Source of the DNA: Guillardia theta CCMP2712
Lineage: Eukaryota > Protista > Cryptophyta
DNA: 64,000 nucleotides
NCBI RefSeq assembly: GCF_000315625.1
Contig: NW_005434649.1
Span: 310,001-374,000 of the forward strand
Direction: 5' to 3'
The notes beneath the pieces were generated by a model. The model made no database searches, was not told the origin of the DNA, and saw only the letters and a list, made by a program, of their open reading frames with translations. Numbering within the stretch: the stretch's first letter is position 1; every line of letters begins with the position of its first letter. Made by a program: the position numbers and the translations under genes. This document shows, piece by piece, positions 10,976 through 28,860 of the stretch.

Positions 10976-12200
10976 TTCCTGACTCTCCTACATACTAGCA
11001 GTTACAAACGGTTATGGTTATGTGGGCAGGGCCCGGGCCCGGCTTGGCAAGTTGAGCTGCCAAAGCCCGGCTCAGTGCCGGTCCTCCGGCCGCTCGCGAC
11101 GGGCACGATTTGTAGCCAACATACTGAAAGATCTATTGACTAGCAAGTTATACTTAATCGAGGTATTCGGTACAAATTTGACTTTTTTGTGTTGTGCATG
11201 TAGTGCTCGGAGCTCGTAGGGTTAAAGTTCTTTTTAGCGTTCTGCTGTGACGAAAATGACCCATGGTCATGCACAGCTGTACCCACCCCCACTGAAATAT
11301 ATCTATCACACCCCTTCTCGATGTATAGTACAGTTTTACTACACAGTGTCGAAGCACCCCTCGGATTAGTGCCGATACCCCCTCAGACATATTTCAGCCC
11401 GGTCTCAACAGGGGGTCGGTAGCTCATGATGAGTTTTGATGGTTTTATAATTGTTTATCAGAGCTTTTTAAAAGTATGACATCACCCACCTTTCGGACAA
11501 AGAGGTCGATATCACCCCTACCCCCTTCCTTCAGCTCAAGGCCACACCTGCAGCCGAACCTCCCAATTCAACCTCCAAGGTGGGTTCAATACCCCAGAAA
11601 AATCCTACAAATAGAGGGGTGAACATCAGTCAAGAGTACCCATCCACCCCTTCAGCTCAACTTGTGAGCACCCACCCATGGATTGTAACAACAACACCCA
11701 CCTGGCAACACAAACTACCACAAAGGCCTTTTCTTTCAGCAAAAACCTTTTGTTCAGCGGTGCGATCGTACACCACCCCCTTTTTTAGGGGAAATATACG
11801 GGTGGTCCTGTTTAGTCCTTGCCTTTCCGCCCCCTCAAAATCGAGCATCGCGAAAACTCTCAAATGTTCGCGTGTCTTCACTGAAATATTCAGAAACATC
11901 ATCCAGAATTTTCAAATATTTAAAAAGAACTTCAAAATTGAAACCCCAAATTGCCATTTATAAGAACCAAGTACGTCAGATTCGCTAGTACGTAAACGAG
12001 GGCAACTACACTCCAACAAGTGGCCAAGGAGAGCGTTGTGCAGAAAGAAAGAGAGGACAGCTCAAGCAAGCATAGAAATAAGAGAGAGCAAGAGCAGAAG
12101 CAAGAGCAGAAGCAAGAACAAATAGCCAAAAACAAGTTTGAAGACTCCGGAAGGACTGAACGCGAGCAAGCCGAGATTGGCTGAGGGCAAGTGAACCAAG

Positions 12201-12668
12201 ATGAAGCAGTCTTGCGATACCAACCTACTCAGTCCATGCTCATCACACAAGCTGTGTGTCGCAGAGCTGTTCTTCTTCGAGGAGCTCAGCAGGACTTGTG
12301 GAGTCGACGTGGCTTCTTCGTGGTTAAAATCCGTCTCGATTTCACCAACTCGATCGCAAACGTCTTCCGTTGAACCAGGCAGCTCACCAGTTTCGCCAAG
12401 GCAGAGACCAAGCTCGGTTGAGCTACAAAAGGCAGCAAAGGGGACCAGAAACAAGAAAGGCTTGTCCTTGAACTGCGTGCCGACAGCCATTAGCCTACCA
12501 ACCACACCTAAGTCGTTTTTTGATTCTATGGAGCCTACTGACTGTCTGCTTCAAGCGATACTCAAAAAGAAGGAAATGCAGAAGTTTCAGACCAAGCTCG
12601 GATCAAAAGCTGGATTACTTTACACGTCAGAGGCCAATTTGGTTCTGGACGATGCAATCGAATGTTGA
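12201..12668 (+). CDS. Two-motif orphan family member A, intronless, 155 aa
   Basis: Motifs VAELFFFEELSRTCGVDVASSW and GLLYTSEANLVLD, shared with three other ORFs in the window. Confidence 0.8.
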   Translation: MKQSCDTNLLSPCSSHKLCVAELFFFEELSRTCGVDVASSWLKSVSISPTRSQTSSVEPGSSPVSPRQRPSSVELQKAAKGTRNKKGLSLNCVPTAISLPTTPKSFFDSMEPTDCLLQAILKKKEMQKFQTKLGSKAGLLYTSEANLVLDDAIEC

Positions 12669-12979
12669 AAGAGTGTGCAAATTTCATAGTAGGAAACATG
12701 TATCATAGGCTGCAAGTCAATCGGGCATTGAATTTTTGTTCAAAGATAATGAATCCGTTCAAAAATCAATGAAATGCTTGATACGTATGACTATTTCATA
12801 ATCCGCATCGTCTGTTGGTTTTGCGCTTCCGAACTGGTATCATCAAGTATGTTATGTTCGTGTAATATGCACGGGTGGCAAGTTGCGAGGAGAAGACATG
12901 CCCAAGTTTAAGGCAAGTCAACAATCTTGTTACAATTTTTATTTATCGTAGTATGTGTCTTTATCAGCTCTAGTCCATC

Positions 12980-13507
12980 CTAGGTAATGCACTTATCGAG
13001 GACGTTGCACGCTTCCGATGTGAACAGTAACCCAAGGAAGCACTTGCTGTCGTCAGATTCCATAAGCTCACGGCTCGTAATCCCACTTTGAGAATTTGTG
13101 CACTTCTGTTCTATCAAAGACTTGTAAATGGATTTCAAGTCCATGACGGAATCTTCGGACCTTATTGACTGAGGGGAGGGCGGTTGAATCTGAAGATCCA
13201 CGCTAGTTGACCGCGTTCGGAGCCCACAATTTCTCATGTTGATGTGAGACACACTTGTGGCGTTCTCAAGGCACATCAACGATCTTCTCCTCTCCTTGTC
13301 TCGACATATTTGACCTGATGATGCCTTGCTAGATCGTATGTTTCGTAAGAGCCACTCGTTCGCCTTCGATTCCCCGCAACTCGCACGCAGCTCTTGGTAG
13401 AAATAGAGATGTGCTGTGCTCGAATCCGACGATGATCTTTGATCCCGTGAATGCTGTGCCCTAGGCTCAGCTGATAATGCAGTTTGGTCGGGATTGCCTC
13501 CGGCCAT
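12980..13507 (-). CDS. Two-motif orphan family member B, intronless, ~175 aa
   Basis: Motifs TAHLYFYQELRASCGESKANEW and LGLLFTSEACNVLD; ATG of MAGGNPDQ at 13507. Confidence 0.8.
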   Translation of the reverse strand: MAGGNPDQTALSAEPRAQHSRDQRSSSDSSTAHLYFYQELRASCGESKANEWLLRNIRSSKASSGQICRDKERRRSLMCLENATSVSHINMRNCGLRTRSTSVDLQIQPPSPQSIRSEDSVMDLKSIYKSLIEQKCTNSQSGITSRELMESDDSKCFLGLLFTSEACNVLDKCIT

Positions 13508-13920
13508 TTTCGCCTTTCTGTTCAAGACAAGAAAATTTCGTTTACGTATGAATAAAATCACAATGTGTAGTGTCGATCGATATCGAAAACTTTCTTCCTG
13601 CTTCAATTTTGAGTGCTGAATTGTAGTCTCTTCTGCTGGTTTCCTCCCTTTACACCCGACCCGTATTTATTGCCTCGCCCCCAAATCCTGCTAACTGCCT
13701 TCTCCTAAGCGATCGAACGGACATGACTCCTCTTTGATGACAAAATATCCGATCCCTAAACGCATCGATCCCGAAAGATCTCGTAGGTAACACTCCTTTT
13801 CGAGGACGACGCCCGGTTTAGATTGTCAGCACCTTCTTTTACTACACAATGCTGACCAGGTGAACTCATTTATCCCGTCTCCGGCGTCATCATTCTTGTT
13901 ACTACACTCCGTGCCACCTC

Positions 13921-14420
13921 GTGACAGATGTCAGTAGGCTGAAGCTGAGCCAGCCGACTCCGGAGTCCGGCGAGTACCGTCAGACCGTTCGATGGTCCGA
14001 GTCTGGCCCGGGCAGGGCCGCCGCGGCCCGGGGCATGGTAACCTTACTTAAGTTACCTTCAAGTTGGACCGCCCAGGCCGGCCCCGGGCCCCGGGCCGGG
14101 GCCCGCAGGCACTGGCACTGACTCCGACTCGGCGTGATCACTCAGGCTCAGGCTCCCGCGGCCCGGGCCCGGGCGGGGGGGGGCCCGGGTGGGGGGGGGC
14201 CGGGGGCGGCCGCCCACCCCCACCCCCCCGGTGACTGGCAGTCTCGCAGTCGCCGGCAAGCGGGGGCGGCCTCTCTACTCAGTGAGGCTCCGAGTCTCAG
14301 GCTGATCATCGGATCAAGTTGTCACCGTCACCTGCCAAGTTACTGATTTTCAAACTCCGTTTGAATCATGAACTTAAGTTTGCCACCGGAGTAAAGCCTG
14401 TACCGTGCGGCCCGCCGCTG
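13921..14420. repeat. GC-rich intergenic block of a probable dispersed repeat type
   Basis: Dense CCGGG/GGCCC palindromes with ACTCAG/TGAGT and AAGTT words; similar blocks at 11020-11105, 22255-22560, 29100-29470 and 48020-48470. Confidence 0.55.
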
Positions 14421-14964
14421 CATCATCATCGGCGAGTCAATCCACTGCCACGGATGATCTTTGCATTGAAGATCAGGCGGCAGTTGACTGTAGTACTGAA
14501 TTGGCTTCGGAAGTTCCGGCGAACTGGAAGGAACTTGAAACTGAAACTGGCGGCAACCATGATCCGAAGTCTCAGGATGCTAAGTCAGATACTAGAATCA
14601 GAGGCCGCTACATCAGAGCACTGATCAAGGATGAGATGATCTGCGGGTCAGCCGCCCGCTGGGATTGATGGGTTCGGATTTGAACATGATTGCTTTACTG
14701 CTACTATCACATAGACATTGCTTGTATTTTTTTTTTGATTTTCAAGTTGGGCAGTGAGGAAACTGAAATGCTGAGATGCGGCGCGGCGGAAAAACTTTGA
14801 ACCCCTGGCTAACAAGCCTTCAAGTTGAGTTGCACGTTGAAGCCTGACAAGGCCAGGAGGGAGAAAAATGAGAGGGAGAGAGAGACTGAAGAGTTGAGGA
14901 GGAGAAGTCTGAAAGGTAGGACCGAGACCCTGACTAGGCTGGCGTGCTCGGACCGAGACCCCGA

Positions 14965-17900
14965 CTAGCTCGCGTGCTCAGGATAGGGGCTCAGGGGAGA
15001 CTCTTCCTGATGATGATGCGACGCTGCCTGCATCGCGAACCTGCGAGCTTGAAAGTGCCACCTGCGGTAGATCCGGTTGAAGACCAGGACGCTCAGCTCC
15101 TTGGCGTTGGGCACCAGGTCGTGACTTTCCTTCTCTGTGTCTTCAGCATTTTCAAGCTGGTCCATCAGCACTCCGATGACGATGTTGAGCAAGATGAAGC
15201 CAGACATGGAGTAGAAGAGGTAGAAATAGATGGAGGAGATCGCCGGGGCTGCAGCGTTGTACGGGCCGCAGCTGGAGACGCAAGCCACGTAGCCCGAGGA
15301 GGAGGACTGCCCGGGGGTGGAGCAATTCATCAGTCCCATCTCCTCGAGGAAGCTTGCCTCCGAGTCCGTGAGGCACATAGGGAGCGCCAGCTGAGCAAGG
15401 TTCATCCAGTTCTCAGTGTCCTCCCCGTACAGGGTCATGGACTCGTTCCTCTTGAGAAGCGCGTTGGCGGCGATGTACATGGCGGCGTCTGAGGAGTGCT
15501 GCGAGAAATGCGTCAAGTTCGCGCTCGCGTGCAGCTTCCACCCTGCCGAGGGATCGTAACCGAACTTGGACACGTACAGGTCCCACACGTCCTGCGGCAC
15601 GGGCGTCCTTGCTGGGGCAGCGAGCCCGAAGATGGGCAGGAGCGCCCCCCAGTTGTCCCCACTGGCAGTCCTGAAGAGAGTCAGGAGGGCCATGCCGACC
15701 CCCTGGAAGTGCGCGTGCCTCTCCAGCAGGTAGTCGGGGTCGGTGAACATGCACCGGATCCCCAGGTTGTCCGGCTGCCCCTCGTCCCCTGAGACGCACA
15801 TGCTGCCGAAGAGGTTCACGCCGAGCACGCCGAAGATGAAGAAGAGGAGGCAGAGGCCTCCCACGAGGTTGCCGATGGCTGGCAGCGAGCTCCCTAGCGT
15901 CGCCACGATGGCCTGCAGGCCCTTGAGAGTCTTGAAGATGCGGAAGGCGCGGAGGATGCGGAAGATACGGAAGATCCTGAGAATTCTGAGGATGGTGGGG
16001 TTGAATCCGAGAGCCGCACCGGCGTTGTCAATCATGATGCCGATGAAGCTCGTCATCACGATGAAGAAGTCGAACTTGTTCCAGTTGCCCCTGAAGTATC
16101 TCTTGGGGTGGAACGCAAGTATCTTGAGCACGCACTCCCCGCCGAAGATGAACGTGAAGAAGAAATTGCAGACCTTCTGGAATCGGTTCTGCCAGTCGCT
16201 GGGCTTGAAGCTCTCGAACGACATGGTGAGCACGTTGGTGATGATGAAGAAGGCGATGAAGAGATCGAACTTGGAGTGGCTGATCACTCTGAACGCCTTC
16301 AGCCGGATCCCCGACGTAGGGTCGTCGAACACCTCGGGGAGCTTCAGGACAATCTTTGTCGGCTCCGCAGCGGTCTTGGTGTAGTCCTCCATGGAAGCGA
16401 AGTAGCAGTCTACAAACACGCCCACCACCATGTTTACTATCACAGCACCGGCCACCAGCAGGGAGACGATGTAGAAGATCGACGCCATGAAGAGCTGGTT
16501 GTTCTCCTCAGGCCCCGTGATCTTGCTCGTGGTGTCGGCGCCTGACCAGAAGTGGTTCGGCCAGTTGTCCTGGCTTGCCAGCATCAGCTGCGTCAGGATC
16601 GCGCTCCCCAGGTTGTCAAAGTTGAAGCTGTAGTGCGTCCACTGCCGCGCATTCCCATCCGAGTCCAACCCCACGCACTCCATCATCGTCCACACCGTCG
16701 GGTCGCTACACCAGACGATCTTCCCTTCCAGCAGCTGCATCCCCAAGATTCCAAACACGATGCAGAACGCCACGCAGAGGATCCCAGTGTTCATGAGCGG
16801 CTTCACGGCGCTCGCCATTGTCATCACCAGCACCCGCAGCCCCTTGGCTCGCGACAAGATGCGCAGGGGGCGAAGGGCTCGGAAGATCCTGAAGATTCTG
16901 AAGATCTTAAGGGCCCCAAGGTTGACGTTGAGCCCGCTGAGGATGACGGTGAAGAGGACATCGATGTCGCTGGTGACAACAAGAAAGAAGTCAAGCCGAT
17001 TCCATCCAGACTTGATGTAAGTTGGGAAGGAGAGCGCGACGATCTTGAAGATCATCTCCAGGGTGAAGGAGGCGTTTAGGATGTAGTTGGCGTTGTTGAG
17101 GAAGGCGGACATCACGCTCGTGTCAGAAATGTACGGGTTTTGAATCGCGAGGCAGATTGTGCTCATGAGGATACAGAGCAGGATGTACCTCTCGAAGTAC
17201 TTGTTCACCATCACCGCCTTGCAGCCCTTGCGCACAATCGAGTTGGGAGGAAAGCAGAAGCAGGATTTCTTCTCCACCACCTCCACGGGCACTGGCTGCT
17301 GATGAATCTTCCTCTGCGTCTCCCTGTGTTGCAGGTGCACCTTGTTGATGGTGGTCGACTGAATGGTGATGCGAGCCTTGGCGAGCAGCTCCACGATCAT
17401 GCTCACAAACTCATCGAAACTGATCCTGCCGGTCCCATCCGTGTCATACTTCTGCACCAGCTTCTTGAGGTCCCTCGGCTTGTTGCTGAAGTAGTTGATC
17501 CCCAGCATGACCAGCGCGTCGTTGAACTCGTACACGTCGATCTCCCCTGACCCATCCTTGTCGATCTCAGTGAACAGCTCTTCGATCCTCGATCCCAGCT
17601 CCCCCTCCTCCAGATGCCCCAGCTTCTCCATCAGCTGCTTCTGCATGAGCTCCTCATTCTGCTCTATCGCCTGCGCCTTCAGCTCTCCGAACTTCTGGAT
17701 CAGAATGGCTACAAACAGGTTGAACAGAATCCAGTTCCCGAAAACAATCAGGCTGTAGAACCAGAATCCGCTCGCTGCCCCCGCGTTTGCGACTGCTGTG
17801 TACATGTCATCGTTCCAGTTGGCGATGGTCATGACCTGGAACGAAGTCAAGAAGGCATGTCCTAGATCGTCGAAGTGGAATCGTGGCGAGGCAGAGACAA

Positions 17901-20806
17901 TTTTAGGCACATTCAGGACTGGATCACCATCCACGGCGCTCCATATCATGCCCCTGCTATCGAGGCGCCCTCCCAGGGAACGGTTGACCACAGGGTCGAT
18001 GTCGCCAAACTCAACGTAGACGTGCCATGGCGTCTGCGAGTGGTTGATGAAGTCGAACGCCTTGATAATCCCATGGCGTGGCTCCCCGCCATTCATGTCC
18101 CACGGGAACTGGACGTAGACCGCGGAGCCTCGCTGCAGGTCTACGTTGGACAGCAGGTCGATCATCTTCCCGCCCAGCACATTCATCCCCAGGATCGTGT
18201 AGATGAGGAGCATCATCAGGATCAGACCGATGAGCGCGCTGACGGACTTCATCACGGATCCGAGGATGCGAATCTGTTTCTGCAGGTCTGGCATGGCCCG
18301 TAGAAACTTAGTCAGACGCACCAGCCTGAAGGCCCTCAGCACGGATGTAGCCCCGTTCCCGTCGCAGTTGTAGTACTGCAGTGGGTTCATGCTGAGAACG
18401 CCCGTCAGGTTCAGGACCTTGGGGACGATCAGGGAACTTCGAATCTGTGGAGTGAGAGTGTCCGGCGAGACCTGCACCACGTCCGACAGGTCTACCTGCT
18501 GCCCCAGCATGCTCGGGGTCGGCTTCTCAGTGAAGCAGATGTACATGCTAATCACAGACGGCAGCTCGACAACGCTCGCCATAACAATCACAAAATCGAA
18601 GATGTTGAGGCCGGACTGGAAGTACTTGAGGAAGGGAAATCGAAAGGTGGTGCCCAGCCCTATCATCTTGATCAACATCTCCCCAACGAAACAAGCGGTG
18701 AAGATAAGATTCATGATTTGCAGAGAAGCGTGAAATCCTGGGCACCAATCTTGTTCGTACGTGCAGATCCCTCCAGTCGCCATGCACACGGTGTTGACTG
18801 TAATCACTCCAAGAATGAAGTTTGTCAACGCAGGAGACTTGGCAAGGAGTCTGAGCTTGAACTTCAACCAAGACAGCCCTGTCTTCTTGGGTGTTTTTTG
18901 GTTCAGGCTGAGATTCACTGACCCACCGTTCCGCATTCTTGCTTCAATGTCATCCCAAGACATACTCGTGAACCGTTCACGAGCGTTCAACGGGGAGTGT
19001 ACGGACGACTCTGGAGCAACCTTTGCAGATTTGCCTTCTGCAGGGTTCGCAATGAATTCCTCGACCACCTTCTCTACCTTCACTTCGCTGCTCTTGTTCT
19101 TGTACTCCTCCGTCAGCTGCGAATACCTCATCGCAATCACCACCAGGAAGAGCTGGACCGCAAAAAAAGGGCCGAGAGAAACCAGGAGAACAAAGTACAG
19201 GAAGTTCCAGAAGCCAACAGTGTCTTGGATCTGATAGCAGATGTCCGTCCACCCCTCCAAGGTCATCACCTGGAAGATAGTTGTGATCGCACCGCCGATC
19301 GAGTCGAAGTTGATGGCGCCTCGCCCCGGGTTCTCCCCCAGGAGCAAGCATTCTTGTCCAACGGAGCATTGAAACATCCCCCCGCTGTGACTGCCCGACG
19401 TTACGTCCATCCCTTTCGACGCCCAGAAATAAACCCACTCGTCGGTGTCACGAGGCCCCAGCCAGCAGCTCGACCCGTCCCCCGACACCACCCCCGTGTC
19501 GATGTCGAAACACACCCCTCGCATCAACCCTGTTGGTAGTCTCACGTCAGACGCGGACACAAAAGTTTCCTCCTCCCTCCGCAAGCAAGCTGAATTACCG
19601 CTGAACAGTTGAACTCCGAGGATGCCGAAAACAAAGAATATAAAAAGGCAGACGCCAATGACGTTCCCCAGGGCTGGCAGGCACTGCAACAGGGGTTACA
19701 ACGGCAACAAGAGCAGCCGAGCCTTCACCTGCAGCAGGAGCACCACCAAAAACTTGAGCTCAGGGAACTTGTTTACAGCTCGCAAGGGCCGCAGAACGCG
19801 CAGTGAACGCAGTGCACTTAGATTTCCTGAGCCCTGTCCTCCACTGGGAATAAAATCCAGAATACCTATTATTACAACCACAAAATCCAACCTTTGTGAG
19901 CAACCAGTAAGATATCTCATCACAGACATTGCAGCAGACGAGGCTCACTCACCAGTTCCAAAGCTCCGCCAGGTAGGTCTTTGACCCCCAGAACAGGCCC
20001 AGAGCTATGATCTTTGCAACGCACTCGAGAACAAAGAAGGCAGAGAAAAATTTTCCAATCAAGTCGAGGAAATCCCTTCCTGCAGGAGGCCAGGTCTTGC
20101 CCGTCCCCCACTTCCCACAATAACCATACGGCCTGACGGAGACGAGGAGCATGCCCTCATCGAGGGGACCTGTCAGCATGTCACCTTCCAGGTCCAGCAG
20201 CTCAACGAGAGTACGTCAAAAGGGTCAATCATGGCTAGCTGGACGGTGTTGAGAGCGATGACAAACAACACGATCCGATCCCACCACTTCCACTCTATCC
20301 CACGGATACACAGCTTCCTGAGTGGGTTTTGCAGGCTGAACAATCGTAATGATCTGGGAGATAAAATCATCTCAATAGAGGGTTCACCCACATTTGACTA
20401 CCTCGGGGAGTATTTGCGGGGATCTGGCCATGCTCTAGATGCCTCTTGCTTCCGTTTCATCTCTCGGCGCTCGGAAAGGGCGACAGAAGCTGATTTCCGA
20501 GAAGACGTTGTGAATCCAGATCTGAATCGTTTCAGTCAGCAACTCACAAACCTCCGCCGGGACATGTTCACCTGATACTTGTCCTTGAAGCTTGAGATGC
20601 ACTTCTCTGAAAATCTGCACTGAAATGCCCATTTGGCACTGCTTTTGAGTAACATGCAAACTGCTCTTCGGATTCCGTGGACAGGATGGTATCCTGCCTT
20701 GACGGAATGGACTCGCTGGGTGCTTCAAAGTCGTCAGGGTGTACTTGCCCCTCTGCATACTTGTCAGGTTGACTTCGACAAGGAGCGCAGAGATGTCACC
20801 TGACAT
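14965..20806 (-). CDS. Four-domain voltage-gated Ca2+/cation channel alpha subunit (Cav-like) with an EF-hand pair in the II-III linker
   Basis: Four S4 segments (LRSLRVLRPLRAV; LRAFRLVRLTKFLR; IFRIFRIFRALRPLRIL; LRILRIFRIFRILRAFRIFK); pore motifs TLEGW, TIANW, SQDNW, SGDNW; EF loops DKDGSGEIDVYE and DTDGTGRISFDE. 5' exons splice from ATG 20806; probable in-frame 69-nt intron at 19530-19598. Confidence 0.93.
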
Positions 20807-22193
20807 TTGTTATGGTTTCACGATGAATTGGGGTTCACACTTGAAAGACGTTGTGTATTGAGGTAAAATGCTGGCATCAGGGATTTCCAGCGTTGAAGTA
20901 CAGGATGTAGAATTCAGTAGGATAGCGCCTGTTTGTTCGAGGTAGAAGGCAAGGGAGGATGGCCTAAACCAGGAGGTGTATCAAACCCCACCAAAGTGAG
21001 AAGACCTTATCTCAAGGAGGAGGAATGGGGGAGATTGTTTCTGGTGAGATGCAGCGGAGAAGATGAGAGAAGATAAGGCGTGGCGAGCAGGATGAGGAGG
21101 AAGGAGAGAGAATGAGGAGAAGGAGGAGGAGGTCTCAGCGAGGCAGGAAGCAGAGATTAGAGACGGTGCATGCCGTCGGTTGGCATGGACATGGGTGGCG
21201 TCGGGTCAACTCTGAGGCGAGCTGCTCACTAAAATCTGGGTACATTGTAGGGTGGGTCATAGTGAGAGGGGGTAGTCGGTGGATAGGGTAGTCAATAGGT
21301 GGGAAGGGGTACAGGAAAGTCATATAGTGTGGAGGAGACGGGGTGACCCGTCTTGAGTCGTGAGGGAGTCGAGGGGAGGGGTGGTGAAAAGTTGAAGGAG
21401 GCACGGGAGTACCGAGAGAAACCTTGAGAAGGTGATGGCTGTTATTGGAAAGAGGGGTACTGTGACTAAGGGGTGGTGGTAGTCACTTAGCTAGGGTAGG
21501 ATAGGTAGTGGGCTAGAGGGGAAGGGGTGGTGTGGAGGAAGGATAATTAATGAAAATTGGCTCACTACTGGCTGAGGTCTACGGCCAGTGGGGATCAAAG
21601 GGGGTGGGTGGAGATAGTGGGTGGGGTTGGGTCGGTTGATCAAAATTGAGCTACTGCAGGGGGTAGGGTGACTTCCATTCCCCGAGAAGATTCCCCAACC
21701 ACCTCCCCTGGAAAAGATAGGAATATAGGGGTACAGGATAACTACAGCGGGGACGGTATCTTGGAGTAGGGTAGTACATACTTCAACATCTATCAGAGGG
21801 GTGGGTACTGTACTGAGCATTTCAAGTTTGAGGTGGGGTACTGTTTTTTATCAGTTTTTTTCCTTTCCGATGTGTTCTCTAGTCGGTCAGACCAGGCCTG
21901 TGCAGGAACACAGGTGGGTAGGGTGATATCTGAGGGGTACTTAAGACCACAATTGAAAGTGAAAACAGGGGTAGTCCAACGCAACAAATGACCACCGGAC
22001 TACCTCTGGTGGTGACGAAAAGGGCATCCACCACCGGCGTGTTTGCCTTCGAAAGGAGGGGTTCCTCTCCCTAGCGATGAGAAGCCTGGTTCCTATTTGA
22101 CCCGCGGGCTTCTCCGGGGGTTGGGTGGGGTCGGGAGGGGTGGTAGCACAAAATGTACTTGCCGCCTTGAGTGATACTTTGGAAGGTATAAGC

Positions 22194-22487
22194 TCTGATT
22201 TTTAACTTAACTTTGAGTAAAGTCAAGTTCCGCTACCCAGTCAACTGAAGGAGTAGGGCCCCGCCGGCCGGGGGTACCTGGGGGTGGCCCAGTGGCCGGA
22301 GTTTTTTGGTCAAGGCAGCGGCTCGAGGCCCTCAAACTTTCGCTCAATTCTCTGGTACGGTCTAACATAACTGAGCTTTTAGTTATCTGATTTTCTCAAT
22401 ACCTGATCTGACTTAACTTTGAGTAAATATACTTGCCGTAGTGACTCCCTCGTACCGTCTGATTTTTAACTTAACTTTGGGTAAAGT
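22194..22487. repeat. Three dispersed direct copies of a ~21-30 bp AT-rich motif TCTGA(TTTTTA)ACTTAACTTTG(A/G)GTAAA
   Basis: Copies at 22194-22223, 22407-22427 (shortened) and 22458-22487. Confidence 0.8.
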
Positions 22488-22609
22488 TCACACACCGGGC
22501 CCTTGGTTGACAGTGCCAGGCAACTCGGGCCGGCCCGGGCCTGCCCTGTACGGCAACGTGTACTGAAAGAAACCTGCCTCAGAGCGGAGGGGGCCACCGT
22601 CATGGTGGA

Positions 22610-25037
22610 ATGGAGATGAGGGGAGCGGTGGTGAGGACGAGAGGACAGAGCATGACGACCAGGTTGCTGGTCCTCCTGATCAGCGTTACCAACTGGCAAC
22701 ATGCTCTGCCTGACAGCCTCAACTGGCTCTATGAGGATGTCGGCCGATCAGAGGCATTTCGAGCAAAAGCAACTAGGTTGGGTACCTCTCCGTTCATCCT
22801 GGTCGAGAGGGACCCGGTACGCTACTCTAAGCCAGAAGAAGTGGAGAACAGGGTAGCTCAGATGATGGTAAAGAGGAACTTGCTCCGAGGGGGGTCAACA
22901 GCCGGCCCGATTATGCAAGGGCCACCCTGCAAGAGCAGCACCTACCGATCACCTCATTCGTCAGTTATGGGTGGGAAGCTCCAGCATCTCCGCGATCGAT
23001 GCTTCATCATGGAAATCGGGAGCCAGAAACAAGATTTGCTGAGTGGTGTGCTAGCTTCAGATGGGAGTCGCTGCGATGTGAAGCAAGTTTCTCACAGCTC
23101 CGAGCCATCGGGGTTGAGTTTCCCGGAATCAACCGTCTGCGACGATGCGATGAAGACCCATGGTCAACGGAGTCAAAAGAATGTCCTGTCAACTCCTGCT
23201 ACAAAGAAAATGACGAAGGGCTGCAAAGAGCAAGCGATCCCATCCTCAACAACGTGTAAGAAGGCAAAGATGGGCAAGAATGTTGTCACTTCGCAGATGT
23301 TAAAGTTGGTCAACTCTCAGCCTGATGGGAATGTGTTAAGCCAAAACAGGTACATACTTCTGATAACAGTACTATCTTTTAGCTGTGTTGTGCTCCTTGT
23401 TTCAACTTCGGTTTCCATCTTAAGACTTTTTGGGCAACAGGACAGAAATATTTGAAAGACCAGCCAAGAAGAGCAATTCAACCAGCAGAGACAGCGAGGT
23501 CTGCTGGTCCCGAGGATACTCCCACCTGCTGCTGCATCGACAGCATCATGGACATGTCCACGTGCAGAAGGGCTGCAGTCTTGGGTGCATGACTTGGAAG
23601 GTGTGTCATGGTGGTGGTGTCGAGAGGGGACTGCTGAGAAAGGCTCGTTTCGGCAGGAGGGGAATGCTATGTTCGAAGTTTCGAGATCAGGAAGCGGTAA
23701 ATTCTGCAGTGTGGACTATTTAAGGGCCTCAGTCAGTTTGTTCTTCATCCTTGCAGCCCATGTGTATGGCGTACATGTGTGCATGTATAACTTGGTACCT
23801 CATCAGAATCATCTCCTTCGGAAGGCAGCCCATCAGATTCTGTCTCTCGTCCCACAGAGAAGTCAAGCTGTATCTGCTCACAACTCAGAAACTGGTCGGC
23901 AAATCAGCGTGCGATGCAGAGACAGAAGAGGTATGGATGAGAAGCGCTCTTTCTGCATGTGCGATGATTTGCGGTTTGACGCAAGTGTCCAGGCTCTCAG
24001 AGCTGAAGATCCAAATGATGTGTGGAATAGGGTTTCAATGGAATACTCAGGTTGCAATCCCTGGTCTTGCTAACCCTTGACACTACTCCAATGCTAGACT
24101 TTTATTTGGGAAAAACAATATGAGGAGTTGCTCAAGTTCAAAGCGAGATTCGGGCATTGTAAGAGCATGGAGGAGAGGGGAGAGATCTAAACAACCTTTG
24201 CAAACAGGCAACGTGCCCTACAAGGGGAAGCTGCGGCGGTTAGGGTGTTGGGTGTTCAACCAGGTGAAAGCCTCTGCTGCCGACCTTCACTGCCTGACGC
24301 CTCACGAAGCGAATCTTGCAGCGGAAGGGACTCCTTTCCTCAAGCAGGTGATGAGTTGGGGATGGTAGGGAATTCGACGAGCACTTCTCAAACGACAACA
24401 GGAAACGGCGTCTGGATGAAGCGGATTTCATGTGGCAGGTTTTCTAACTTTCAATTGTTCCCTTGGGGTGTGAACTGGCGCTTCAATAACAGGTTCGGGG
24501 GGCGGACAAACTGTGGCAGAAAAGGAACAAAGAGTTCGAGTGGGAAGCTCGGTTCCGTGAACTTTGCCTGTACCGTATGCATCATGGTACGTGCGACGTG
24601 CCGAGGAAATATGAGGTTCGTATACCTCAAACCCTCCTGCCAAGCCTGACAGGACCATTTTCCCTTGTTTGTTTCTCTCTCTCCACCAGGGCAACATCGG
24701 ACGGCTCGGCTCGTGGGTGATTTCCTTGCGAGTGAAGCACAAGCAGAGGAGGCTGCAGCACACAAGAAAGCGACAGCTGGATGTTGTCTTGACAAGCCAT
24801 CAAGGCAAAGCTGACTTTTGTTCCTGTCAGGCGATCGGATTTCGATGGCAGATGCGGAAATCGTCACCATGCCGTCGAGAAGTACATGTGAGAGCTTTGC
24901 GTGCATTCTGTATCAATATATCTAACTCCCTTTGCTTGTGACTGCAGCTGAAGCCAACGGACGTTTGGCCAGAGGGCCCAGGCATCTTTGCCGAACACTA
25001 CTGCGGAAGTTCTAACGAGAAGGTTGATTTTACTTAA
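22610..25037 (+). CDS. Helicase-associated (HA) repeat protein with hydrophobic N-terminal leader, multi-exon
   Basis: Spliced segments QLRNWSANQRAMQRQKRLSELKIQMMCGIGFQW, WEKQYEELLKFKARFGHCNVPYKGKLRRLGCWVFNQ and WEARFRELCLYRMHHG..RLGSWVISLR match the HA (PF03457-type) consensus. Confidence 0.75.
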
Positions 25038-25076
25038 AAGGATTCTTGATGGATTAACGACAAGCACAATTATCAA

Positions 25077-25499
25077 CTAAGAGCTGCGTGCACTCGAGGC
25101 CGCTTCCGATGAGCTCTGCAGCCTGTCGAGCACCAAGTTTGCATCTGCGGTGAACAGCAGCCCAAGAAGGTGAGGATCTTCTGCCCCCTCCATTTGCATC
25201 CTCTGGATCTCCTTGGCGCTAAGAAGATCGTCCTCGTGTTGATCATCTCTCGGCATCTCTTCCAAGAGTAAAGACCTGTAGATGGCGTTGTCTTCCAATC
25301 GGGAGGAACGAGGGGAAGGAGGACAAACGTCAAGCTCAACCCTTCGGCATTGATCTCGTCTCTCATAGAGACTGACGCGTTCAGGGCTGTGGAGCCAGAG
25401 CTTCGCCGTCTGTTCACCACAAGCTAATCGAAGCTCTTCATAAAGGTATAGAGCAGCTACACTTGACTTGTCCTGCTTTGTGCGCGGTGTTCTCTCCAT
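25077..25499 (-). CDS. Two-motif orphan family member C, intronless, 140 aa
   Basis: Motifs SVAALYLYEELRLACGEQTAKLW and LGLLFTADANLVLD. Confidence 0.8.
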   Translation of the reverse strand: MERTPRTKQDKSSVAALYLYEELRLACGEQTAKLWLHSPERVSLYERRDQCRRVELDVCPPSPRSSRLEDNAIYRSLLLEEMPRDDQHEDDLLSAKEIQRMQMEGAEDPHLLGLLFTADANLVLDRLQSSSEAASSARSS

Positions 25500-26327
25500 C
25501 GTCTTTGTACGATGTTGTCCGTTGACAACAGACGTCGGTGCTTTGCACGCAATGAATGACGTACCACTTGCTCCGAGTTCTGAAGGTCAATCAAATCTCT
25601 CAAGCTCTGTCCAGACCTTCAGCTTGCTATCGTCGATTCAACCTCCAAGCCCTTCCTGCTTCCTCGCTGACTGCCTTACTGTTTCCCTCACCTTGTCTCT
25701 TTTACTACAGCTCCTGACTTCTTCATACATAATTTTAGCCAAAAGGTTTTTCGCAGCGACCCATTCGATACCGGTACAAGTAAGGTAAAAATACGGGTCC
25801 AGTGATTTTTGCAATGAGAAGGCAAAGTGCGTCTTTTCGGCTGCAATACCATATACAATGTTATTAGAGAATCGGCTAGAAAATACACGACCTTTCGTCA
25901 CCCCTCCCGCTACCCATGTTTTTTACTGCTCAGGGGTCACGAGCCCCTGGAGCACCTTGCTTGCCAGTTAAACAGAGAGTATGGTGGGGGTACTACTGTC
26001 ACCCCAACGTTTGTCTATCTAAATAGGGGTGAAAGGGCAAAAGGACCCCCACCTCAAGGATCATGATCAGCTTCGTGACTAGCTCAAGTCACGTGGGAGA
26101 CACAAGGTTTAAAGATGCGAGGGACAGGAGCAGGGGAGTACTGGATTCAAGGGCAAGCAAGAAGAGGCTGAAGGGTGCGCAAGGGAACTACTCTAGGACT
26201 GGTGGTGAACGCATGATGCCTTTCTGAAATGCGTCATGCGTTGTTTGTGATGTCGCTGATGCGATGACTTGTTGAGATTGTTCACCTTTGAAGACAATCT
26301 AATCCAAAAATAGTTGAAGTACGAGGC

Positions 26328-26870
26328 ATGATGTGTGGCTCAAAATTGGATTGCCAGTTAGATCACTTAGCCGCAAAGTGCAACAGAACTCCTTCGAAAG
26401 TAAGTGTTGCCGACCTATACCTGTTTGAGGAGCTCAAGTTGCAATGTGGTGACCAGAAGGCAAAAGAATGGTTTTACTCGTGCAGTGACAGGAGCATGGA
26501 TTTGAGCACAGACTATGCCTCAGTGAAGTCGATCACAAGGGAACAATCCGTACAATCTGTAGCAAAAGAGCAGGTGGAAATCAGCCTGGATATAAGCATT
26601 GCCGAAGACCATGAAATGAAGCCTGACGATGACATGTGTTTCGATTCTCACGAGGACTTGTTTGCGAAGTTGAAATCGCACAGCTATTCGACATTACCCA
26701 ACCTTACAAGCGATGATCAATACCATAGAAGCCGTTCGACTCCCAACCTCCGTCAGATCGGACGGCATGTAAACTACGATGACGTTGATTCAACTCAGTA
26801 TCTCGGGCTCCTATTCACGTCTGAGGCAAACCTTGTGTTGGACAGACTTGAGAGCATCCACAATATGTAA
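26328..26870 (+). CDS. Two-motif orphan family member D, intronless, 180 aa
   Basis: Motifs SVADLYLFEELKLQCGDQKAKEW and LGLLFTSEANLVLD. Confidence 0.8.
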   Translation: MMCGSKLDCQLDHLAAKCNRTPSKVSVADLYLFEELKLQCGDQKAKEWFYSCSDRSMDLSTDYASVKSITREQSVQSVAKEQVEISLDISIAEDHEMKPDDDMCFDSHEDLFAKLKSHSYSTLPNLTSDDQYHRSRSTPNLRQIGRHVNYDDVDSTQYLGLLFTSEANLVLDRLESIHNM

Positions 26871-27073
26871 AGGACAGAAGTACCACAGGAAATGGTTCTA
26901 TCTCTATCTGGACTGGAGGGAGGAAGCCAGAGGACATGATTCTGTCTCTATCGGGAGCGAGGAAGCCACTCTGATGGAGGGGGGTCGATGGCAACCATCT
27001 ACTCAAAACTTTATAGTGCAAGTGAAGGATATAGACAATGTGAATGGGCGGCTGCTGTTAAAGATTTATTACA

Positions 27074-28860
27074 TTAATATCTCTGTTGTAAATGGTTTGA
27101 ATACCTCAGAACCGTTGTCTCCTCTCTCACACGGGGCGAAGGGTGCAGGGTTGCGCTTCTGCTGCTCAGAAACAAGGAGTCTCTGCGAGAGAGCAGGGGA
27201 AGGGGGAGCGAGCGGCTCTGCGAACTTAGCACTCGCCCGTTCGTCTCCCTCCTCGTCATGTAGGGAGTCTTGAAGCCGTCTGCGTGTGGCTGCGAAGATC
27301 GGTTGCTACCGTACCAGCTGGTGGGTCTCAGGGAGCTGACGTCAGCTTTCTTGCGAGGCCTGTAGGTGTAGCGTCCTCTACGGCTGTAACCGATTTCGCG
27401 GCAAGCATTCTCAACGATCCCGTTGACGATCTCAGCAACGAGGAGCCTTGGGCTTAAGACCTCTGCCCGTGGATCATCCTGTAGCCTCGGGATGTCCTTC
27501 AACAAGAGAAGATGCGAGTACTTGTATTCGCCAAACTTGATCTCAGAAATGACGTGGTCGAAGAAGATCCGGCATCTGTCTCCTAGGATCTTGACAATGG
27601 TTCCCTGTCTGAATTCTTTCCTCATAATCTTCCCCTTGCTCTTGTTGAGCTTGTGACAAGGGTAGAACAAGTGCGGAGAGATTATGACCTTCTGACCGAT
27701 CGCCATGGACTCCTTCTTCAGGAGGATCGAGTCCAGCATGGCTCTCATCTTCATTCCCAACTCTTCGGCTTTCTGCCTTCCGAGAATCCCCCGAATCCGT
27801 TTCTGTATGAGAGTTGCTGCATTCTTCAGCATTCTAGTCTGCTCACCGACAAATTTTCGATTGATGCAACTGCGCAGGAAGAAGATCTCGAGTGTCATCA
27901 AAGATTCTCTGTAGCTTATCAGTTTCCGCCTGATCAATTGCATCCGACAGAAAGCCTTGATGAAATTTATCGCATCCAACTGTTCCTCCGTTTCATCCAC
28001 GTCCCAGGCCAACGCCCAGAAATCAGATTTTTGCGCTACGATGTTCTTCATTCTGACCAAGTGCTTCACCCAAAAGTCGTACCTTTCTATCAAGTCGTGT
28101 AGACTTGGCATTTCGCCGTACCCCACGGATTTCTTCATCATCGACTTCTTCTTCACATGAGATGCCTTCGAATATCTTGAGGAGATCAAAAGGTCGTCGG
28201 GAGACCACTTGCTATTCTGCGACCCAGACACGGCTCGGTCGTACCAGTTTCTCAACGTTTGACGTAAAACATTTGCAGACATGCGAAGAAACAAACTTTT
28301 GAACACAGCCTCTCTGCTCCTGACATCAAGGTGTTACGCATAGCACAGGAAGACGATGTCATTTTCAACTCAACACACCTGAAATGCAAGATGCGTATCC
28401 ACCTGAGCAACAACTTCTGCGCAAGGTAGACTTCTTTCTCTGTAAGCTTCACTCTCAAGCTCAATATCACACTGATGGTACTTTTTTTTCTCATTTCGTT
28501 CGTTCAGTCAAGTTAAATTTCAATTACATGGACAGTGGAGCCTTTCATCAAACTTCTTGCGTTGAGTGATACCGTCTTGTTGCACGGAAGGGGGGTTGGT
28601 GATCTTCATCCATTCCCACTACCTTTGAAACAGAAATCAATCGAGTGAAAACACGTCATGGCAATCCTACTCTTCCTCTACAGTTTTCCTTTTTGACGCT
28701 GTTCACCTTGTCTCCTCCAGGCTCCCTTAACCTTTCCCATACACCTTGAAATCCTGACCCTGTCCTTCGTTTGCTCCTTGTTCTGATTTGAAATGAATAC
28801 GTTTTGGGGTTCTGCCGACCGTCTCTTGTTCAACGTTCTGACCTTGATGTTCAGATCTCT
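27074..28860 (-). CDS. IQ calmodulin-binding motif protein, ends approximate
   Basis: 410-aa ORF with AATLIQKRIRGILGRQ (IQ consensus), followed by a possible SH3/KOW-like beta segment (IGQKVII..GTIVKILGDRCRIFFD). Confidence 0.6.

Follow-up and report, generated by a model that had tools for sequence, protein, structure and literature searches.

Four small open reading frames (ORFs) in a 64,000-nucleotide stretch of Guillardia theta CCMP2712 (the window) are expressed, intronless protein-coding genes, with transcript contigs in hand for ORF3 and ORF4. By sequence they form one old subfamily, recognisable by T[SA][ED]A[NC].VLD in the C-terminal motif, within a much larger family whose named members all come from cryptophytes. 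What is new is the family itself, built around two conserved motifs; how its members work we infer. Cryptophytes are a major, poorly characterised algal lineage and much of the G. theta proteome lacks annotation; the known family members bear no label beyond "hypothetical" or "uncharacterised".

Each of the four ORFs was found where the first-pass annotation had placed it on the nuclear scaffold. ORF1 (12201..12668, plus strand) encodes 155 aa and belongs to the TSEAN subfamily, and ORF2 (12980..13507, minus strand) encodes 175 aa counted from the ATG at 13507, with an open frame that extends to a TTG at 13606. ORF3 (25077..25499, minus strand) and ORF4 (26328..26870, plus strand) encode 140 and 180 aa, respectively. 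From these coordinates it follows that ORF1 and ORF2 are convergent and ORF3 and ORF4 divergent, the arrangement originally described. The N motif lies at 12258..12326 in ORF1 (VAELFFFEELSRTCGVDVASSWL, by alignment and translation), 13349..13417 in ORF2, 25392..25460 in ORF3 (by translation) and 26406..26474 in ORF4 (VADLYLFEELKLQCGDQKAKEWF, by translation), and the C motif at 12612..12650 in ORF1 (GLLYTSEANLVLD, by alignment and translation), 12995..13033 in ORF2 (GLLFTSEACNVLD, by translation), 25125..25163 in ORF3 (GLLFTADANLVLD) and 26805..26843 in ORF4 (GLLFTSEANLVLD, by translation), in every case on the strand of its ORF. The alignment of the four ORFs has 20 invariant columns, mostly in two blocks: 23 residues near the N-terminus, [VT]A.L[YF][FL][FY][EQ]EL...CG...A..W[LF], and 13 residues near the C-terminus, GLL[FY]T[SA][ED]A[NC].VLD. 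Both shared motifs are thus confirmed by the alignment, with coordinates verified by translation. The likeness is far above chance, because in a genome search a profile made without ORF1 and ORF4 (A5) still recovered the former at E=5e-22 and the latter at E=1e-9.

RNA contigs cover both genes of the divergent pair. The ORF3 transcript is unspliced and runs on the minus strand over 25033..25659 (contigs from X4, 25033-25659, and X6, 25067-25656), with a 5'UTR of ~160 nt and a 3'UTR of ~44 nt; strand-specific 3' reads from X22 map to the minus strand here. The unspliced ORF4 transcript occupies 26140..27100 on the plus strand (X4 contig 26140-27100), with a 5'UTR of ~188 nt and a 3'UTR of ~230 nt, and the X22 3' reads (26796-27107) are on the plus strand. 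By these contigs ORF3 and ORF4 are separate, monocistronic, unspliced mRNAs. The spacer between them (25660..26139), presumed to be their shared promoter region, is untranscribed, with a depth of 0 in RNA runs X4 and X6 and of 5.2 in DNA run X15. For the convergent pair, the share of words from 12000-13700 found in RNA-like runs was 0.27-0.94, across six studies; for the ORF3/ORF4 pair it was 0-0.68. The share thus varied among RNA-like runs, and in DNA-like runs it was 0.63-1.0. All four genes had been called intronless; the unspliced contigs demonstrate this directly for ORF3 and ORF4, whereas for ORF1 and ORF2 we infer it from a frame that is unbroken from the N to the C motif. The neighbour at 24300-25002 has five GT..AG introns of 48-74 nt.

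Every window gene has a one-to-one orthologue in Hanusia phi, at 48-76% identity: P0010 for ORF1 (76%), P0006 for ORF2 (51%), P0044 for ORF3 (48%) and P0017 for ORF4 (68%). With an orthologue for each, the four are true paralogues from old duplications, as had been supposed. Closer relatives come from environmental sequences. Contig L022 is 100% identical to the last 58 nt of ORF1, and the ORF2 orthologue P0004/L022 has the same ATG start, 84% aa identity and 90.3% nt identity, with 0 indels in the CDS, although its flanks contain 8 and 19 gap columns. Against a close environmental relative, dN/dS was 0.43 for ORF2, with 0.08-0.26 in its motif segments (0.23 for the N motif, 0.08 for residues 155-175), and 0.57 for a third member, which has 0 motif substitutions; ORF3 against its environmental orthologue L025 gave 0.19, with the motifs unchanged. 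Measured against environmental relatives, dN/dS is lowest in the motifs, in keeping with the proposal that selection is focused there.

The original "family of four" was an undercount. In G. theta the matching loci number no fewer than 24, of which some 16 are complete, and an exhaustive HMM search of public data returned 310 clusters at a cut-off of E<=1e-3, falling to 127 at E<=1e-10. Named members come solely from Guillardia, Hanusia phi, Rhodomonas sp. CCMP768 and Cryptomonas curvata, the remainder being metagenome contigs; orthologues thus occur in four cryptophyte genera, transcriptomes included. Judged on these named members, all from cryptophytes, the family is lineage-specific, as first thought; for the family as a whole a restriction to cryptophytes is at most probable, most relatives being metagenome sequences that carry no taxon. 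No relative was found among the IMG/VR viral contigs.

Across 154 collected sequences the typical length is 105-250 aa (median 168), and 87 of them fit strict patterns of both motifs. The family consensus of the N module spans ~25 residues, S-[IV]-A-D-x-Y-F-[FY]-E-E-L-x4-G-x3-A-x2-W-L. Within its core, [YF]F[FY]EEL-x4-G-x6-W, the E-L, G and W are invariant in 78 sequences and present in all four ORFs. The C module, near the C-terminus, reads G-L-[LIM]-[FY]-T-D-A-A-H-x-[VI]-L-D in most members; its G-L-[LIM]-[FY]-T-x-x-A part is found in all four ORFs, with G, T and A invariant across the family, and in the window subfamily [SA]-[ED]-x-[NC] stands at the mainstream D-A-x-H positions. GUITHDRAFT_161957, _116287 and _151056, Hanusia phi A0A7S0EJZ9 and Cryptomonas curvata A0A7S0MW19 share both motifs and the size of the window proteins but have the mainstream TDAAH C motif. 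GUITHDRAFT_151646, on C19, is a true family member with two motifs and the same size, and carries a T[SA][ED]A[NC/S] variant as in the window genes.

The earlier statement that these proteins contain no known domain stood up to Pfam, NCBIfam, PDB-sequence and fold searches. Pfam searches with the four ORFs, 10 relatives and the 84 members of alignment A6 gave no recurrent family: there were 0-2 sub-threshold matches per protein, each family in at most 1 of the 84 members at E<=10, and no match near the gathering score of any family, including VQ, TIFY, Jas, CDI, CP12 and SAP. Six proteins gave no NCBIfam match, and a profile run against PDB sequences gave 0 matches at E<=10. Fold searches with the full ORF3-orthologue model found chance-level helical matches only (best values: VIA-align Z 3.2; Foldseek against PDB E 4.4; ESM Atlas by shape TM<=0.34), and an ESM Atlas feature search with P0041 and ORF2 scored 0.81-0.90 to unrelated clusters, the chance range. 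A literature search by G. theta locus tags, motifs and cryptophyte-specific families found no relevant description.

Structures were modelled with AlphaFold2 for ORF2 and for P0012, an environmental orthologue 94% identical to ORF3 and standing in for it. For the N module the prediction is a high-confidence helix-turn-helix hairpin (pLDDT 90-97), formed by residues 31-60 of ORF2 (pLDDT 92-95) and by helices 14-27 and 29-37 of the ORF3 orthologue (pLDDT 90-97). The C module is predicted to be helical, with helices 109-116 and 120-138 in the latter model (pLDDT 85-88), and the Ser-rich linker between the modules is predicted to be disordered (pLDDT about 55). A weak central helix, suggested earlier, has a low-confidence counterpart at residues 124-137 of ORF2 but none at the IYRSL stretch of the ORF3-orthologue model. 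The top covarying pairs by APC-corrected mutual information fall inside the N motif, including one helix1-helix2 pair. Family members lack a signal peptide and any known domain.

The linker carries conserved [ST]P and P-x-[ST]-P sites that differ from member to member. In ORF2 the central PPSPQS (13166..13183, minus strand), a P-x-S-P site, lies within the Hanusia-conserved block VDLQIQPPSPQSIRSEDSVM; in ORF3 the P-x-S-P site PPSPRS (25305..25322, minus strand) is kept in Hanusia, and [ST]P blocks are conserved between the window genes and their Hanusia orthologues. Further candidate phosphorylation sites are SISPTRS, SPVSPRQ and TTPKS in ORF1 and STPNL in ORF4. Disordered regions that contain Ser and Pro are often rich in [ST]P, and the shuffles used for comparison were composition-controlled: against them there were 432 [ST]P sites where 272+-14 were expected (1.6-fold) and 66 P-x-[ST]-P sites where 13.7+-3.3 were expected (4.8-fold). 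This excess is consistent with the phosphorylatable linker that had been proposed.

The first-pass annotation had further supposed that the terminal motifs fold together, that is, that the N hairpin and C helices of one molecule pack as a single helical bundle around a variable, phosphorylatable loop. Both ends are indeed predicted to be helical with good confidence, and the two motifs are co-retained in most members (the strict patterns being those already given). Nevertheless, both models have a pTM of just 0.29-0.33, and fold searches align residues 10-52 and 80-140 apart. Relatives with N-N-C, N-C-C and N-C-N-C layouts occur, along with N-only variants, and this shuffling argues that the modules act independently. 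In GUITHDRAFT_116287 and its Hanusia orthologue a 19-residue hydrophobic stretch separates the motifs, and no clear N-C covariation was seen in a mutual-information analysis (APC-corrected) that is rough and confounded by phylogeny. Complex prediction of N against C module for the ORF3 orthologue, run without an alignment, scored 0.02, which weighs neither for nor against binding. Given the low pTM, the separately aligned modules, the shuffled layouts and the covariation result, the single bundle is unlikely. Still, a hairpin of 25 residues with four consecutive aromatic/hydrophobic positions might just as well serve homo-dimerisation, or pack against the C helices, as dock on a partner.

A quite different reading sees a motif for docking on a hub protein, Atg8 (LIR/AIM-type) or a similar one, in the N module's [FY]-[EQ]-E-L core and the acidic and Ser residues upstream of it. 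The family would then act as adaptors for selective cargo or for membranes, and some members would be anchored in a membrane. The core fits [WFY]-x-x-[LIV], with E and L invariant and the aromatic residue conserved; yeast Atg19 uses WEEL, and three environmental relatives have hydrophobic, tail-anchor-like C-termini. Yet the pattern is short and common, and here it is part of a longer conserved stretch in which a G and a W are invariant. AlphaFold2, moreover, confidently predicts an alpha-helix at this place, while a canonical LIR is an extended strand when bound; we consider this reading very improbable. Least credible of all is that the ORFs are non-functional, whether as chance ORFs, exons of bigger genes or mobile-element remnants. 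Small, low-complexity proteins with no known domain, whose fellow members are annotated merely as hypothetical, might invite that suspicion, but it is already contradicted by standalone unspliced transcripts, by orthologues in the four genera, by dN/dS below 1 and by a CDS free of indels; as for mobile elements, there are no terminal repeats, no DNA-level similarity among the copies, no transposase-like domain and no viral relatives.

From the anatomy of the proteins, we give about even credence to the family being adaptors or regulators that are themselves controlled by phosphorylation. The N and C modules would be independent segments, each folding as it binds, through which the protein attaches to one conserved partner protein or to two, and proline-directed (CDK/MAPK-type) phosphorylation of the linker would tune docking or protein stability. 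The gene pairs have stayed adjacent since Guillardia and Hanusia diverged and may be co-regulated. Two plant systems offer a likeness. VQ-motif proteins (Pfam VQ, PF05678) are likewise small, mostly intronless, lineage-restricted and multigene, with short motifs in disordered Ser/Pro-rich sequence, and several are MAPK substrates acting as co-regulators; they differ in taxon and in having one module where the cryptophyte family has two, and here FxxhVQxhTG is absent, with no VQ match at E<=10 in the 84 members. JAZ/TIFY proteins (TIFY, PF06200, plus Jas/CCT_2, PF09425) also have two short conserved modules and a variable linker, and each module binds a different partner. This two-partner design suggests the same adaptor logic for the cryptophyte family, although the latter has no Pfam match and the motifs are unrelated. 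A far more elaborate scheme, which we put forward as speculation that is probably wrong in this full form, is a cryptophyte-specific signalling layer of ~20 paralogous adaptors per genome, in which the near-invariant GLLFTDAAH-type C helix would dock on one conserved hub, N hairpins would bring in clients or form dimers with them, the P-x-[ST]-P sites of the linker would act as a switch when phosphorylated by CDK/MAPK-type kinases, and the retained head-to-head and tail-to-tail pairs would encode co-regulated partners.

Disordered protein families confined to one lineage are nothing unusual in protists. In the present case, four anonymous ORFs have become a defined, searchable family with two precise motifs, ~24 G. 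theta copies and hundreds of environmental relatives, which is a candidate for a new Pfam entry. To this the family adds evidence of expression and selection, and targets for mutation: in the N module E-L, G and W (E39, L40 and W52 are among them in ORF2), in the C module G, T and A (T163 and A166 among them in ORF2), and in the linker P-x-[ST]-P. Should the modules indeed dock on conserved partners, the family would open a way into lineage-specific regulation in an alga for which few genetic tools exist.

Regarding the origin of the copies, every complete member found, including all complete ones of G. theta, is a single ORF, and an intron-bearing parent gene was not seen among the members found. 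Around the two window pairs, searches for repeats, inverted repeats and shared flanks yielded short chance matches only. In G. theta members form local clusters (3 on C13, 2 on C16, 3-4 on C94 and 4 in the window), which fits local duplication. With the whole family intronless, members clustered locally and no flanking repeats, the suggested spread by retroposition is not upheld. In a k-mer scan of upstream sequence, GTCAGCA/TGCTGAC showed ~3-fold enrichment, occurring at 10 of 14 G. theta members; it was not counted as evidence, because it is absent upstream of 3 of the 4 window genes and common genome-wide. Beyond the window, an 8.5-kb environmental contig with a family member also encodes a 1088-aa gene that has no Pfam match and a G. 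theta homologue at 47% identity.

All four open reading frames lie exactly where the first-pass annotation had placed them, ORF1 (12201-12668, +, 155 aa) and ORF2 (12980-13507, -, 175 aa) as a convergent pair and ORF3 (25077-25499, -, 140 aa) and ORF4 (26328-26870, +, 180 aa) as a divergent one. The open frame of ORF2 extends upstream of the ATG at 13507, back to a TTG; a close environmental orthologue begins at this same ATG. In the four-way protein alignment 20 columns are invariant, and almost all of them fall within two blocks, whose coordinates were verified by translation of the window DNA: an N motif of 23 residues (ORF1, 12258-12326, +; ORF2, 13349-13417, -; ORF3, 25392-25460, -; ORF4, 26406-26474, +) and a C motif of 13 (ORF1, 12612-12650, +; ORF2, 12995-13033, -; ORF3, 25125-25163, -; ORF4, 26805-26843, +). 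A six-frame genome search with a profile containing neither ORF1 nor ORF4 recovered both (E=5e-22 and E=1e-9), so the resemblance is not due to chance and the shared two-motif layout is borne out. Between the two pairs sits an uninterrupted 1574-aa ORF (14965-19689, -) whose product is a voltage-gated cation channel of four domains, with a linker that contains EF-hand-like sequence.

The earlier count of four members was too low, while the family itself stands. In the G. theta CCMP2712 genome (87.1 Mb, 669 contigs), a search with the four-sequence profile turned up more single-ORF genes with both motifs, on contigs C16, C30, C19, C13, C14, C8, C51, C4 and C94, with three family genes inside 4 kb on C13. 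A wider profile gave 28 matches spread over about 24 loci; at about 16 of these a single open frame carries both motifs, and the others have just the N motif. When 1.84 billion representatives were searched exhaustively by HMM, 310 clusters passed E<=1e-3, of which 127 also passed E<=1e-10; the best 150 of the 310 are mostly 105-250 aa long, and nearly all run from N motif to C motif. The mainstream C motif, G-L-[LIM]-[FY]-T-D-A-A-H-x-[VI]-L-D, lies at or near the C-terminus in most members (the protein ends within three residues of it in 53 of 142 sequences; median distance, 8 residues), and the four window ORFs and the gene on C19 have a T[SA][ED]A[NC/S] variant. All members with an organism name are cryptophytes (G. 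theta, Hanusia phi, Rhodomonas sp. CCMP768 and Cryptomonas curvata), the others being ENA, JGI or Logan contigs without a name; no relatives were found in viral contigs. One member-bearing 8.5-kb lake-metagenome contig also encodes a Pfam-less 1088-aa protein, 47% identical to its best G. theta homologue (E=2e-176), which suggests that this contig too is of cryptophyte origin.

In Hanusia phi all four window genes have an orthologue by reciprocal best match (ORF1, P0010, 76% identity; ORF2, P0006, 51%; ORF3, P0044, 48%; ORF4, P0017, 68%), whereas the window paralogues are just 28-42% identical among themselves. The duplications are thus old, as had been proposed, and predate the Guillardia-Hanusia split. 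Judging from record names, which assign the orthologues of ORF1 and ORF2 to one Hanusia transcript contig (758788) and those of ORF3 and ORF4 to another (755962), both pairings are probably kept in Hanusia; the convergent layout is directly conserved in the environmental contig L022, which contains the orthologue of ORF2 together with the final 58 nt of that of ORF1. The first-pass annotation had suggested a possible spread by retroposition. Local family clusters on C13, C16 and C94, and the finding of no repeats or shared flanks, fit local duplication better; moreover, intronlessness is a property of the whole family and therefore does not mark recent retrocopies.

Reads were mapped to window 24300-27400 from two RNA-like runs (X4, X6), a stranded RNA run (X22) and one DNA run. 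ORF3 is covered by one unspliced contig in each RNA-like run (25033-25659 and 25067-25656), and ORF4 by a single unspliced contig in X4 (26140-27100) and two overlapping ones in X6 (26151-26762 and 26750-26945), while 25660-26139 has zero depth in both, against 5.2 in the DNA run. In the same runs the gene adjoining ORF3 (24344-24948) has five spliced GT..AG introns of 48-74 nt, which shows that the runs are RNA and confirms the contrast between the intronless ORF3 and ORF4 and an intron-dense neighbour. These introns (54, 54, 74, 48 and 60 nt, within 24300-25002) illustrate clearly how short the introns of this genome can be. Raw X22 reads accumulate at 3' ends, on each gene's own strand. Sampled words of the divergent pair are 0-68% present in RNA-like runs versus 63-98% in DNA-like runs, which points to variable expression; for the convergent pair, 27-94% are present in RNA-like runs from six studies. 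A 410-aa ORF convergent with ORF4 (27074-28306, -) shares about 30 nt at its 3' end with the 3' end of the ORF4 transcript (about 27100, +).

Purifying selection was measured by comparison with a close relative from an environmental metagenome (ENA PRJEB17505; dS 0.09-0.19), whose contigs L022, L025 and L026 are 87-91% identical to G. theta in nucleotides over their whole length and which would serve equally well to estimate dN/dS for other genes of G. theta. Selection is moderate overall, with dN/dS of 0.43 for ORF2, 0.19 for ORF3 and 0.57 for a C13 paralogue, and strong on the modules, the predicted helical ends: ORF2 gives 0.23 for the N motif, 0.26 for the central block and 0.08 for the C motif, against about 0.5 for the linkers, and neither motif of ORF3 or the C13 paralogue carries a substitution relative to this relative. 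The ORF2 CDS has no indels, versus 8 and 19 gap columns in its flanks. The selection on the motifs foreseen in the first-pass annotation is therefore present.

These results show a real, expressed, selected and multi-copy family, with named members all cryptophytes, for which no relative could be detected among the families described so far. PDB, Pfam and NCBIfam yielded no sequence match and fold searches no hit (best Z 3.2, Foldseek E 4.4, Atlas TM<=0.34), in agreement with the earlier failure to recognise a domain; by homology, nothing described appears to stand close, and the family is new. In design it resembles the plant VQ and JAZ proteins, small, intronless, motif-only regulator families; however, membership of either is excluded by Pfam search. 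The original observation is thus confirmed and enlarged, and its interpretation supported in part.

Less likely, and supported by nothing here, is a closed domain in which the two motifs fold together. AlphaFold2 predicts for ORF2 (17-sequence alignment) helices at 31-44 and 46-60 (pLDDT 92-95; rest low; pTM 0.29), and for P0012, an environmental orthologue 94% identical to ORF3 (84-sequence alignment), helices at 14-27 and 29-37 (pLDDT 90-97) and at 109-116 and 120-138 (pLDDT 85-88), with a linker pLDDT of about 55 and pTM 0.33. Module layouts N-N-C, N-C-C and N-C-N-C among relatives, N-only loci, a hydrophobic 19-mer between the motifs of GUITHDRAFT_116287 (L020:1381-2139) and its Hanusia orthologue P0007, and covariation restricted to the N motif in a rough scan suggest that the modules are independent. 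The [FY][EQ]EL core might be imagined as a hub-docking, LIR-like motif, but its confidently predicted helical form speaks against this. We infer instead an adaptor or regulator in which two independent helical modules would each fold on binding, joined by a disordered, phospho-regulated linker.

Across 154 family sequences Ser makes up 14.8% of residues. [ST]P is observed 432 times where shuffles of the same composition give 272±14; for P-x-[ST]-P, the optimal context for MAPK-type kinases, the figures are 66 observed and 13.7±3.3 in the shuffles. PPSPQS in ORF2 and PPSPRS in ORF3 lie within a block conserved with Hanusia, R[ST]P..S.P.[ST]PR is found in many relatives, and orthologue alignments also show conservation of linker blocks that surround [ST]P sites and are specific to each member.

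Ten of the 154 sequences (P0058, P0097, P0109, P0122, P0123, P0125, P0132, P0139, P0150 and P0151), none of them a window gene, run beyond the C motif to end in [RK][RK]x[KN]S[ST]xF-COOH, an ending that resembles a basophilic-kinase site placed at the very C-terminus and that we take to be 14-3-3 mode-III-like. Relatives P0028, P0034 and P0057 have a strongly hydrophobic, tail-anchor-like C-terminal tail; given such tails and the inter-motif 19-mer, part of the family may be membrane-associated. Finally, GTCAGCA/TGCTGAC, absent upstream of ORF1, ORF3 and ORF4, has 19 copies in the 900-bp upstream regions of 10 G. theta family members out of 14 (loci L006, with six, L007, L008, L010-L013, L015 and L018, and window 13831-13856), about 3-fold above the already high window density (31 copies per 64 kb), and may be a common promoter element.
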